Below, piece by piece: positions 2,457 to 40,410 of a stretch of 40,819 nucleotides of DNA. Origin of the DNA: Octopus bimaculoides (lineage: Eukaryota). The translations under genes were made by a program, and so were the position numbers. Below the pieces are notes generated by a model. The model was not told where the DNA came from. It was given only the letters and a program-made list of their open reading frames with translations, and made no database searches. Where the stretch lies: positions 16,152,396 through 16,193,214 of the forward strand of contig NC_069000.1 in NCBI RefSeq assembly GCF_001194135.2. Reading direction: 5' to 3'. Every line of letters begins with the position of its first letter. Positions within the stretch are counted from its first letter, which is position 1.

Positions 2457-2770
2457 CAAAATCTACCTTAGAGAGTCTCGATGTTGCCGAAGGATTTAAT
2501 GAAGGAGGCAATGAAATAAGACACTTAAGATGTATAGCAGATATTGGCGTACCTTTTAAATCGCATGAAACCTTTATGTGGATTGTAACAAAACCTGGTA
2601 AATCATACAATTTCACCAAAAAGGAGGAAATCCCGCTTACTTCGAGCTGTTATTCTCTGGTATCATCAGATTATACTTTCACTTTACCAGCCAAAGACCT
2701 ACATGACACAAATATCACATGTAAAACAAATTTTGCTTCACTTGATGTACAATTCTCCAATGAGATGTAA
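2457..2770 (+). CDS. Gene A, second Ig-like domain exon (KSTLESLDVAEGFNEGGNEIRHLRCIADIGVPFKSHETFMW...SSCY...TNITCKTNFASLDVQFSNEM*); upstream exons lie outside the window
   Basis: Acceptor ttgcag at 2451-2456, phase-1 start, open frame to TAA 2768-2770. R-C...W...C...C pattern aligns with exons 18910-19234 and 36233-36535. A donor AG|gtaaat follows at 2784/2785. Confidence 0.8.
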
Positions 2771-4034
2771 AATCGTTAGAAAAGGTAAATTGATTTTCTA
2801 TTTCGTACCCTGCTTAGTGTTTTCCCTTTTCTTGTAACAACGGTTACTTAGCCTCAGCTCAACCGCTCTCTAAGAGGCCGATGATCGAAGGTATTCTGGG
2901 TGTGACAATCACATCCGTTCTTTTCAGGAATAGTATAACTACGACTATAATATCCAACGTGTACAACTTAATTTTAAGACAGGTTTCGTGATATGTCCGT
3001 GATCTGGATACTTTTTTTTTTTTAGTTAAAATGCCACGTAAAGGTATTTTCTCTTTATATATGCTTTTCATACATGTGTATGTGTGTGTATGTCTGTGTG
3101 GGTGGGTGTCTTTGTGCATCTGTGTGTACGAATATGCTTTCATGTTTTTATACGCGTGGGTGTTTGCACACAAGCTATGCTTATGTGGTTATATGTAAGT
3201 GGTTGCCGTGCATTTGCATTTGTGAATATGGATATGTTTCGTTGTTGCAGGGTGCAAATATCTGGGCAAAGTTTCTTTTAGATATACGCGTGCATTCATA
3301 TTTGTATATGGGGCATGCATATTTTGTGTACGTTTACAGACACGCGTGATTTTGAATATATGCATTCATGCGTATTTCCATGTATGTATATAATCTTTTC
3401 ATCAAAATACACTTATACCCTAGAAAGAAAACTAGATAGACAGAAAGAAGAGGAAAGCAGCAAAAGGGAAGAAGAAAGAAGAAAGGAAAGACAGTCATAA
3501 AGAAAGAAATAAAAGAATAATTGATTTTTCTTTCTTATCCAATTCCTTTCCTTCTATTTCCTTACCAAAATACTTACAACATGCCTTGCCGTCCATCCAA
3601 CTCCAGACATCACATCTGTAAATTAACGAAATAAATTGCTCCCTGTCAACATGTAATGTTTGAGTATATAAATGTCCTTGATACACCTATTGTAGAGATC
3701 CAAACAGATCCGCGTAGGAGCTATAATATAAACTTGTACTTATCTTTATTTCCCTACATTTTCTCTACATTTTCTGTGAATTAAAAACTTTTCAGAAGTT
3801 ACTTATCGAATCTAAAGGAAGTGGGCCTGAGCTCTAAACATATCAATGACAGTTTTACATGTATTTGTACACACAATATCAGATATATTCATCTATGTAT
3901 CTATCTATGTATTTATGTATTTATATTCATAAACACACACATACAAGCGCACGCGCGTAAATATGTCTACTTGTTACCTTCTTCATAACTTAAGTATAGT
4001 TTCTCTCTATTATTGCAATTCTTCCCTTTTTCAG

Positions 4035-4160
4035 ACTGCTGTTTGCTTAACAACTTTTCCAAGACTTCGAAGTCAACTTCACAGTTAACTCTATTGGTAA
4101 TAAATGATATTTCCTCTATATAGTGTATTGAGTCCTTTGTTCAGCAGTTACAGCTTGTTT
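4035..4160 (+). other. Gene A probable terminal (3' UTR) exon with AATAAA at 4099-4104
   Basis: Acceptor tttttcag|ACTGCTGTTTG. Sequence is homologous to 26117-26250 downstream of gene B. The 3' end is approximate. Confidence 0.55.
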
Positions 4161-4177
4161 TTCAGTATTAAGAATGA

Positions 4178-4350
4178 ATGTATGCATGTGTGTATGCATG
4201 TATGTATGTATGTATGTATGTATGTATGTATGTATGTATGTATTTATGTATGAATCTATCTATCTATCTATCTATCTATCTATCTATCTATCTATCTATC
4301 TATCTAGCTAGCTATCTAGCTATCTATCTATCTATCTATCTATCTATCTA
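4178..4350. repeat. Compound (TATG)n-(TATC)n microsatellite
   Basis: Direct reading. Confidence 0.97.
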
Positions 4351-37643: not shown

Positions 37644-38110
37644 TTTTGCTTTGATTTCACTTTCCAGTTTGGAATAAAAATCTGTATTAAAACATCAAAT
37701 ATTGTGTTTCTAAATACTATTTAATTTCAATTGTTTACATTTTATTCTAGGAAAGGTGCACACACTGACGGAACTACAAGGTACTCCAGGTATATTATAT
37801 CTTTTAACTTTTGCTACTTTCACTTATTTCCCTGTGGCCATGCTAAGTCATTACTCTAAAGGGTCTTCGTCGAACAAATCGACACCAGTGCTTATTGTAA
37901 CGGTCTGTACTGACGAACTGAAAAGCTACGGGTATGTAAACAAACCAACACTGGTTCCCAAGTGTGGGGAACGAATGATAAGACACATACATACGCACGC
38001 TCTCTCTCTTTATCTCTTTCTTTCTCTCTCTCTCACTCTCTCTCACACACACTCTCAACACGCACACGCACGCACACACACACACACACACACACACACA
38101 CACACACACT
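37644..38110 (+). repeat. Local duplication unit 1 carrying mini-exon 1 and a decayed SINE
   Basis: Aligns with 39965-40410 (offset about 2.32 kb); 52 of 60 nt identical immediately after the exon. Confidence 0.85.
37751..37789 (+). CDS. Gene C candidate 39-nt mini-exon 1 (GKVHTLTELQGTP)
   Basis: ttttattctag acceptor, CAG|gtatat donor, phase 1-1 compatible with the exon 3 donor, no stop. Duplicated at 40073-40111. Confidence 0.55.
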
Positions 38111-38269
38111 CACTCACACATGAACACAGACACACAAGTACACACGATCGCGCGCACGCGCGCACACACACACATGTATACACTCTTTCGGTTCTCTCTT
38201 GATTCTTCACTAAAGATCGGTTTTTTCATAGGAGGTAGGTACCTCAGAATAGAGCGTGTCTCTCCTCAT

Positions 38270-39050
38270 AGGTGTACATTTCGAAGGTTTTAATGATTTT
38301 TGAATTGTTTTTATTCGGAGTGTTCATTATTCCATATGTTTTTGAAAACGTCTGCCTGCCTCCAGTGTTTAGTTCCCATAATATTGTTGCGAAGAGTGAA
38401 TTCCTATTCATTTGGGTTCTTGCTATTACTGTTCTTCATGACTCTCAATGTTTACACTGGGTGTGGTTGGGGGAATGAGAGAGTTCTTCGATCCCTTGGC
38501 TAGTTCCTAACAACGAAGAGAGAATTATCAATTTTGATGACTTCCATGTTGTATTTAGTACCACCATATGACCAGCATCTTCCATCATTTGAAGCTGTTG
38601 ATTTTGTTTTTCTTTCAAGTCTTCAGAAAAGAAAGTCTTGAAGTGGATCTATCTGCCACGTGTTTGTTAGCCAATCTCTCTGCCCTAAATGATGAGCTTT
38701 AAGTTCTTCTTCTCATTCGTTTCTGCCATACACAAATTTGATATCGTTTTGTGATTTTGCAGAGTTCTGAGAAATTACTCCCAACCACATATCATCGAAA
38801 TTTAGGTCGGCACGGAGAAACGTGCCAATATTATTCAACGAAAGTTAGTACGAGCCAGGTCTCAAAGTCACCAGCAGTGTCCTTGATGGTGTCTTTGTTT
38901 TCTCATCCCTGAATATTGTGGGGTAAGATTATAGGCGGGTGTGACTCGTATATTTTGGGTTTGCGTCCTCTATTCTGAAGATGACATTTAAATAGTGTTC
39001 ATACGTCCTCCTCATAATAAAAGGGGTTTCAATTTAAGTGTTGGGCAAAA
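38270..39050 (-). mobile_element. Decayed ORF1/gag-like LINE fragment
   Basis: Frameshifted minus-strand peptides (YNLTPQYSGMRKQR; GRCWSYGG) loosely resemble the 16863-17477 ORF and a zinc knuckle. Confidence 0.35.
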
Positions 39051-39964
39051 CTGCAACCGAATCTACCATAGATGAAACAATTTAAAAAGACTTGACATTA
39101 GGTTTTGGTGAGGCAGAGGTGCGTTAATCTCTTTCTTTATATATATATATATCTTTGTAACTTTGTGACAGATTGTGAAATGGTAGTAACCGTCCTGTGG
39201 ACATAATGTTACAATGCTTTATTTCTTTAATCAAAGTGTTACATAATCAGAGTTTTCTTTTTTGAAATTACACTTGCGAACGATTGAGTTTGCTTAATAA
39301 ACTACACAATATTATTTGAGTATGTAAGTGTTTACTGGTATTCTTTTTGTTGTCTTCAATCGTGCCGTTTGTTATGCTGGTCAACGCCACAATATCATAG
39401 ACTATGGATCTGTTTGAGCAGAATAGACCTGAGGTTAGACAGCTAAAATAAAGAGAAAGTCGACTTCGGTGTAATTCGAACTTATGATATAGCCACGACA
39501 TATTCTGCCTCACGAAGGAGTTTCTATGTGCTAAATAACATCTAACTCTCTCTGAAACGCATTCTGTCGTCTTAGAAAAAGTAAGTTACATTGGACAATG
39601 AAGTCCTACTGATAAAATAAGAGTACTCCCCGCCACCAAAGATTTCCATCCAGTCACACCTTATCATTTAAACAAAATGGCATAACTCTGGCTCAAGCAA
39701 TATGAAATAGGTACTAGTTCATATTTTAAAGTCGATGAGCTAGCAATAGGAAAATATAGCGCGGCCCATATTGACAAATATATAAGAACACTTTCTACAA
39801 AGAAAATCTTTACAAATAAATCGTTATAAAAATTTTTTATACAAAACAACGAGATAAAAGTTATTGACTGAATTTCAGTTCAAGATCGAAATTTGATTCT
39901 AACTCTCGATTGTAGCTCTAGTGACACACACACACACACACACACACACACACACACACACATA

Positions 39965-40410
39965 TTTTGCTTTGATTTCACTTCCCAGTTTGGAAGAAAA
40001 AACTGTATTAAAACATCAAGCATAGTGTTTCGAAATACTATTTTGTTTTTAATTCATTATAATTTATTCTAGGAAATCTGCCGCCAACAATCGGACACAC
40101 AGATAATGCAGGTATATTTTATCGTTTACCTTTTGCTTCTTTCACTTATTTCACCGTGGCCATGCTAGATCGTTACTCTAAAGGGTTTTCGTCGAACAAA
40201 TCGACACCAGTGCTTATTGTAACAATCCCTTCTGCCGAACTGAAAAGCTACGAGTATGTAAACAAACCAACACTGGTTCTCAAGTGATTGTGGGGAACGA
40301 ATGATAAGACACATACATACATACATACATACATACATAGGCTCTCTCTTTATCTCTTTATTTTTTCTCTCTCTCTCTCTCTCACACACACACATACACA
40401 CATACACACA
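39965..40410 (+). repeat. Local duplication unit 2 carrying mini-exon 2 and a decayed SINE
   Basis: Aligns with 37644-38110. Confidence 0.85.
40073..40111 (+). CDS. Gene C candidate 39-nt mini-exon 2 (GNLPPTIGHTDNA)
   Basis: tttattctag acceptor, CAG|gtatat donor, same length and phase as 37751-37789, with homologous flanking introns. Confidence 0.55.

Follow-up and report, generated by a model that had tools for sequence, protein, structure and literature searches.

An octopod-specific tandem array of genes for secreted proteins with two predicted immunoglobulin domains and rapidly changing domain exons

The overall goal of this work was to determine what is encoded in a 40,819-nucleotide stretch of Octopus bimaculoides chromosome CM046620.1 (approximately 16,152,396-16,193,214; hereafter the window), and how the genes in it have evolved. 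An earlier description made from the sequence alone (the original prediction) had proposed three genes here, each with a signal peptide and two highly divergent immunoglobulin (Ig) domains, as candidate recognition or immune receptors. We found two such genes and a single exon of the same family. We estimate a probability of about 0.75 for the following explanation of the whole: the window belongs to an octopod-only array of secretory two-Ig genes that arose by tandem duplication, has diversifying Ig exons, and encodes extracellular binding modules. Coordinates below refer to the window, counted from its first nucleotide, unless another locus is named.

Results

Two complete genes and an orphan exon

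Exons were detected from stop-to-stop frames and tblastn, and then with hidden Markov models (HMMs) built from the family. The family HMMs matched two exons for the first, V-like domain (d1) and three for the second Ig domain (d2), all on the + strand, with E values from 1e-26 to 1e-39. These make up two complete genes, LOC128250267 (gene 2) and LOC106880707 (gene 3), and one orphan d2 exon (gene 1). The three head-to-tail + strand genes of the original prediction were therefore recovered as two full genes, with all exons on the + strand as stated and gene 1 reduced to its d2 exon. The limits given for the array, 2457 and 40111, coincide exactly with exon edges. Genes 2 and 3 show the predicted layout, in which a signal exon of 49 nt is followed by one V-like and one further Ig exon; gene 1 has neither a signal exon nor a V exon in the window. 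Every exon is bounded by canonical AG...GT splice sites, and the frames of all five Ig exons are open, with no stop codon inside any Ig domain of the window copies, both as had been described. Linkage in phase 1, also described, holds throughout for the signal-to-d1-to-d2 junctions of genes 2 and 3, but d2 has a phase-2 donor in gene 1 and in gene 2.

Gene 2 spans 14629-24196, and its spliced model is 100% identical to the NCBI protein XP_052830969. The genomic locus of that protein (L001) corresponds to 2689-34196 and gives the window its place on the chromosome. Its 49-nt signal-peptide exon (MLLTIIILTMASYSSA; 14629-14677, + strand) ends in phase 1 and is followed by the 324-nt d1 exon (15140-15463, +; phase 1-1, d1 HMM E 1e-39), the 325-nt d2 exon (18910-19234, +; phase 1 to phase 2) and a last coding exon ending in RRNPKEME and a stop (24172-24196, +). 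An alternative 5' coding exon, from isoform X1, was located at 12689-12751 (+) by tblastn with the N-terminus of protein P0002 (100% identity). This exon is probably an annotation extension, because the signal peptide would be buried behind it.

Gene 3 runs from 30606 past the end of the window, and its spliced model is 100% identical to isoform X2 of LOC106880707. The 49-nt signal-peptide exon (MLLVILMLMMVPYNSA) lies at 30606-30654 (+); the NCBI isoform X2 has its start, at 30402, in this exon too, but further 5'. The d1 exon (318 nt; 34883-35200, +; phase 1-1, d1 HMM E 1e-35) and the d2 exon (303 nt; 36233-36535, +; phase 1-1, d2 HMM E 7e-34) are followed by two tail mini-exons of 39 nt each, at 37751-37789 (+; GKVHTLTELQGTP) and 40073-40111 (+; GNLPPTIGHTDNA), and the final coding exon lies beyond the window. 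The mini-exons sit inside the first and second copies, respectively, of a repeat of approximately 480 nt that is present in two full copies (37603-38078 and 39924-40412; 82% identity). Because they occupy homologous positions in the two copies, the tail of gene 3 was lengthened when a segment containing an exon and adjoining a dispersed repeat was duplicated. Fragments of the ~480-nt repeat were also observed at 25147-25231 (-), 9675-9772 (-) and 12858-12902 (+). Read-through at the d2 donor of gene 3 was another option, with a hydrophobic tail as its result; we rejected it in favor of the annotated splice, since the donor is canonical and conserved in Octopus sinensis.

The gene 1 exon (2457-2766, +) has a phase-1 acceptor and matched the d2 HMM with an E value of 2e-26; it was excluded from the set used to build that model. 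Its frame is open across the domain. An in-frame TAA follows directly (2768-2770), with further stops beyond, and a donor of the gene 2 type would fall at 2784 (followed by GT), behind these stops. We found no signal exon, d1 match or exon-sized open frame in positions 1-2456 of the window, and a word-indexed protein search found no annotated protein that contains the exon. This exon may end the coding sequence of a paralogue that lies upstream and is unannotated, or it may be a relic.

Predicted fold and conserved framework

Both domains are predicted to be Ig beta-sandwiches, with d1 resembling the V-set and d2 having seven strands. Structure prediction had been named as a check on the Ig fold, and AlphaFold2 (AF2) together with Foldseek returned Ig beta-sandwiches. 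The AF2 model of gene 2, computed from an alignment of 19 family sequences, has two all-beta domains, a mean predicted local distance difference test score (pLDDT) of 88 and a predicted template-modelling score (pTM) of 0.76; pLDDT exceeds 90 in d1 and is 81-95 in the blocks of d2. With this model, PDB matches from Foldseek numbered over 1000 (E<=1e-3), and the top ones span both domains of antibody Fab and T-cell receptor (TCR) chains. The gene 3 d1 domain modelled alone (pLDDT 94, pTM 0.86) has a nine-strand V-set pattern, and DSSP assigned strands A, B, C, C', C'', D, E and F and fragments of G. Its structural neighbors are VHH, TCR V and sodium-channel beta V-set domains (TM 0.56-0.70), and the best 50 Foldseek matches of this predicted model are essentially all V domains. 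Matches to Fab, TCR and VHH chains had a Foldseek probability of 1.00.

Sequence profiles recovered little of this. Pfam gave sub-threshold matches for gene 2 to Ig_2 (E 0.015) and Ig_3 (E 0.052) only, and no match at E<=0.01 for the 19 family members; assignment to the Ig superfamily (IgSF) therefore rests on fold and motifs. A sequence-profile search of the PDB gave only marginal matches to Fc-gamma-receptor and light-chain entries (E ~0.006).

The motifs agree with the Cys/Trp framework that the original prediction had seen as common to the copies, since the family alignment keeps the B- and F-strand cysteines and the d2 tryptophan. In d1, the B-strand cysteine is nearly invariant, the D, Y and C of ..C-x-D-x-x-x-Y-x-C are invariant, and the F-strand motif D-x-A-x-Y-x-C is kept across the family. 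The invariant residues of d2 are C150, W166 and C214. There are additional invariant cysteines, in the d1 motifs GFxC, CWK and xC and at one position in d2. The conserved cysteines of gene 2 are C42, C84, C96, C103 and C111 in d1, and C150, C190 and C214 in d2.

Ig exons change fast and stay open

Between window copies, d1 is 41% identical and d2 22-32%, in agreement with the predicted level of about one third or less. We compared three exons with their O. sinensis orthologues, for which dS is 0.10-0.18. Amino-acid identity and dN/dS (omega) were 62% and 1.44 for gene 2 d2, 72% and 0.87 for gene 3 d1, and 81% and 1.01 for gene 3 d2. At the nucleotide level the orthologous Ig exons are 80-91% identical and their flanking introns 79-92% (one poorly aligning flank, at 50%, was excluded), so that the Ig exons are conserved no better than the introns beside them; the signal exon of gene 3 is 98% identical. 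Amino acids in the Ig exons change at the neutral rate or above it. Both species keep open frames, splice sites and the framework Cys and Trp residues, and orthologues differ in length by multiples of 3. The chance that all three exons would stay open under random substitution at the observed density is ~0.007. Selection on the family is well supported as diversifying or, at the least, as strongly relaxed while still preserving the frame.

Comparisons among paralogues allowed exons to be set against their own introns. The intron flanks of the gene 2 d2 exon (18598-19515, +, exon included) are homologous to 2164-2456 and 2785-3063 around gene 1 d2. The two exons are 55% identical, compared with 74% for the introns around them (Fisher p 4e-8), and for the pair dN is 0.86, dS 0.48 and intron K 0.32. 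The region 14311-14749 (+), comprising the conserved 5' region of gene 2, its signal exon and the start of intron 1, is 72% identical over 442 nt to 30296-30723 of gene 3, which is above the level of the Ig exons.

The most divergent domain of the cluster is gene 2 d2, with 22-28% identity to all other second domains. Compared with paralogue P0007, gene 2 is 56% identical in d1 and only 27% in d2, and the gene 1 d2 exon is 61% identical to P0007 d2. Because gene 2 d1 and gene 1 d2 are both close to P0007 and gene 2 d2 is distant from it, gene 2 d2 is the domain that was remodelled. With flanking introns still 74% identical to those of gene 1, this indicates accelerated change specific to the exon.

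An octopod family with several kinds of tail

An exhaustive profile search over 1.84 billion representative proteins (cut-off E<=1e-3) gave a family of 45 representatives. The named members come only from O. bimaculoides, O. vulgaris, O. sinensis and Argonauta hians, and the remaining matches are short genomic contigs. No member is recognizable as a named gene, as the original prediction had said of the window copies: the annotations read only "uncharacterized protein LOC..." or "Ig-like domain-containing protein". The proposal of a lineage-expanded family is borne out by named matches that are all from octopods, by at least five loci in tandem and by dN/dS of 0.87-1.44. A slowly evolving orthologue of a conserved cell adhesion molecule had been put forward as the finding that would speak against it. 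We rejected such an orthologue, since the profile search gave no matches outside octopods.

At least five family loci lie head-to-tail in ~96 kb, among them two further + strand members 25-55 kb downstream of the window (locus L003), and a second O. bimaculoides cluster is present on the same chromosome at 43.4-44.0 Mb. Clustering, for which the original prediction had suggested tBLASTn and HMM searches as a check, is seen in both the downstream members and the second cluster. No published work on the window genes, and no paper citing the run accessions of the family's Logan contigs, was found in the searchable literature.

No hydrophobic segment follows the second Ig domain in the products of genes 2 and 3 or in the O. 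sinensis orthologue (tails of P0001, P0003 and P0004), and the proteins stop 8-60 residues past that domain. The label "immune receptor" goes beyond the evidence for genes 2 and 3, whose products have no transmembrane segment and so are secreted and not receptors in the transmembrane sense. Across the family we distinguished soluble tails (the window genes), hydrophobic ends resembling glycosylphosphatidylinositol (GPI) signals, transmembrane segments with cytoplasmic tails, and mucin-like stalks. In the neighboring gene LOC106880715 two exons alternate at the end of the coding sequence (L003 20395-20472 and 20590-20658), one encoding a hydrophobic, GPI-signal-like end (DKLCDANIITKILTFATILFVIGNLL, then stop) and the other a soluble end. 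An exon homologous to the hydrophobic one was observed in the orthologous O. sinensis locus (L002 31095-31166), downstream of the gene 3 orthologue.

The same O. sinensis locus contains, at L002 34936-35049 (-), a sequence that resembles the signal exon and has 87% identity to the signal peptide of the family. It is in the opposite orientation, ~13 kb downstream of the d2 exon of the gene 3 orthologue, and the O. sinensis array may contain an inverted member there.

Gaps and other sequences in the window

The window is eukaryotic in character, AT-rich and laden with microsatellites, and has ten runs of N, all of them intronic or intergenic and none touching an exon. Three gaps lie between the gene 1 Ig exon and gene 2 (6264-12006), two in the 5' intron of gene 2 (13092-14124) and one in the intron separating the two Ig exons of gene 2 (18176-18458). 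The others are intergenic (28343-29600), in a gene 3 intron (30874-31360) and in the d1-d2 intron of gene 3 (35531-35907). Because each coding exon has its own splice sites, gap length has no effect on the reading frame. In the gap-free O. sinensis locus, the gene 3 d1 exon joins d2 directly, and there is no extra coding sequence opposite the gap at 35531-35907. The 236 bases before one 10-N gap (29355-29590) match the 236 bases after it (29601-29836) at 100%; this duplication is probably an artefact of scaffold joining and not a real tandem repeat.

Degraded pieces of a non-long-terminal-repeat retrotransposon occupy 31985-34007 (+) in intron 1 of gene 3, in sense orientation, with matches to RVT_1 (E 7e-6) and zf-RVT (E 2e-4). 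Unassigned open reading frames between genes 2 and 3 (26425-27736, +) resemble these pieces. The d1-d2 intron of gene 2 contains a minus-strand open frame of 217 codons (16866-17516) that has no Pfam match; a stretch of this region recurs at 20401-20599, and the frame is probably a transposon remnant.

Discussion

A model for the array and points that weigh against it

Taken together, the window is one section of an array in which octopod-specific genes stand head-to-tail and which probably expanded by tandem duplication. Each product would be a small, N-glycosylated secretory protein with a cleavable signal peptide, a V-set-like Ig domain, a seven-strand Ig domain and a short variable tail built from mini-exons of 39-42 nt. 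In this model the Ig exons later came under diversifying selection, and the signal exon, 5' region and introns drifted slowly. The proteins may work extracellularly as soluble binding modules, in which the V-like domain would probably make contact with the ligand and the second domain would be a spacer, and paralogues with a hydrophobic C-terminal exon may be tethered to the membrane. The binding partners would be ones that change fast, such as the surfaces of microbes or parasites, or conspecific molecules involved in gamete or self/non-self recognition.

Several observations count against this explanation or limit it. The orthologue dN/dS values are not significantly greater than 1, and for the paralogues dN and dS approach saturation and vary with the alignment used. 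Sites that vary occur in both strands and loops, with a slight excess in loops (p 0.025), and are not concentrated in loops like the complementarity-determining regions, unlike those of a classic antigen-binding site. The AF2 alignments are shallow (16-19 sequences). The five cysteines of d1 and three of d2 leave one odd pairing per domain after the canonical B-F pairs, a count that suggests an interdomain or intermolecular disulfide. The restriction to octopods could stem in part from poor protein annotation of squid and cuttlefish. Transcription of the window genes rests solely on NCBI Gnomon isoform models, and the family's Logan contigs, considered as possible transcripts, are genomic and have introns.

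What the proteins bind, and alternative explanations

The molecular signature would fit humoral immune proteins, gamete or conspecific recognition proteins, and secreted salivary or mucus proteins; we weakly favor a humoral recognition role. A bolder version, an octopod-specific, germline-diversified and positively selected Ig recognition system whose individual Ig exons (e.g., gene 2 d2) would have been remodelled at ~2.7 times the intronic rate, is a possibility that we put forward tentatively. With similar reserve we suggest that such a system might comprise a repertoire of V-like proteins, secreted or GPI-tethered, serving as the cephalopod counterpart of the FREPs or VCBPs described below or as a self/non-self or gamete code. 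A secreted, lineage-specific, tandem family whose omega between sister species is close to or greater than 1 is also what would be expected of reproductive or other conspecific signals (sperm, egg-coat, seminal or pheromone-like proteins), whose speed would be driven by sexual conflict or by species recognition and not by pathogens. The cytoplasmic tails of the transmembrane members, which show no evident immune signalling motif, are in keeping with this, but GPI-like and transmembrane paralogues with mucin stalks are more typical of somatic cell surfaces, and we regard a reproductive function as unlikely. The anchored members bear in the same way on the idea that these are secreted proteins of salivary gland, venom or mucus, since GPI or transmembrane anchors misfit exported toxins. 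We also know of no cephalopod venom class made up of two-Ig-domain toxins, and counted this against the idea. Toxin gene families classically combine a conserved signal exon and conserved introns with hyper-divergent mature exons, and that pattern is seen here, with signal exons ~72% identical between paralogues and 98% between orthologues, mature exons that outpace introns, and soluble products. On balance we consider a role as exported salivary, venom or mucus proteins to be improbable.

Two further explanations turn on the substitution rates. Neuronal or cell-adhesion wiring molecules, such as insect Beat or Dpr/DIP, are under strong purifying selection. The architecture found here would suit a wiring code of that kind, given two Ig domains and soluble, GPI-like and transmembrane tails produced through alternative last exons, but omega is ~1 and the exons outpace the introns, so that the rates do not fit and a wiring function is improbable even with the precedent of the protocadherins, another adhesion family expanded in octopods (PMC9795677). 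Omega near 1 is equally what decaying duplicates would show, whether neutral pseudogenes or annotation artefacts without function, and the unannotated orphan exon of gene 1 with its following in-frame stops, and the gene 3 tail exons that lie within repeats, point the same way. Against decay, both species retain open frames (chance ~0.007, as above), splice sites and the whole Cys and Trp framework, their indels are in frame, the AF2 models are confident and the 5' regions are conserved. As an account of the array, decay is the explanation to which we give the least credence, and pure decay of genes 2 and 3 is unlikely; for gene 1 alone, decay is a substantial possibility, at a little below even odds.

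Comparison with known systems

The family is closest in kind to the diversified IgSF families of invertebrates, the fibrinogen-related proteins (FREPs), the VCBPs and Alr, but it belongs to none of them and has no detected sequence relation to them. Gastropod FREPs (Biomphalaria) and related molluscan IgSF lectins share with it a molluscan origin, a signal peptide for secretion and an N-terminal part made of one or two IgSF domains, and they are likewise encoded with one exon per Ig domain in multigene, diversified and lineage-restricted families. FREPs end in a fibrinogen-like domain, whereas the octopod proteins end soon after the second Ig domain, lack a fibrinogen or other lectin domain at the C-terminus and have no Pfam fibrinogen match; no sequence similarity to FREPs was detected. 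Alr1 and Alr2 of Hydractinia resemble the octopod genes in being clustered and rapidly evolving, with V-like, highly divergent Ig folds barely seen by Pfam. They belong to an unrelated phylum, have no sequence similarity to the octopod family and encode single-pass transmembrane proteins with cytoplasmic tails, whereas the products of genes 2 and 3 are soluble; a transmembrane segment is found, as in Alr, in some distant octopod paralogues.

The variable-region-containing chitin-binding proteins (VCBPs) of amphioxus and Ciona are thought to be humoral recognition factors. They too are secreted products of a diversified multigene family, with a signal peptide and two Ig domains of which the N-terminal one is of V type. 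VCBPs have two V domains and a chitin-binding domain, whereas the octopod proteins have a V-like and a seven-strand Ig domain and lack the chitin-binding domain. Insect Beat and Dpr/DIP are similar in being small proteins of two or three Ig domains, encoded in clusters, with soluble, GPI-anchored and transmembrane members. They are conserved and under purifying selection, and the octopod family is neither; no sequence relation to them was found in the profile searches of the 1.84 billion representatives and the PDB.

Implications

To our knowledge, no diversified recognition molecules have been described from cephalopods, whose immunity is poorly known. An octopod-only, clustered Ig family with exons that outrun their introns is a concrete candidate for such molecules. 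Because Pfam misses the family, the number of IgSF genes in cephalopods is underestimated. Even if the function proves to be reproductive or salivary, the array would be a clear case of accelerated evolution targeted to exons.

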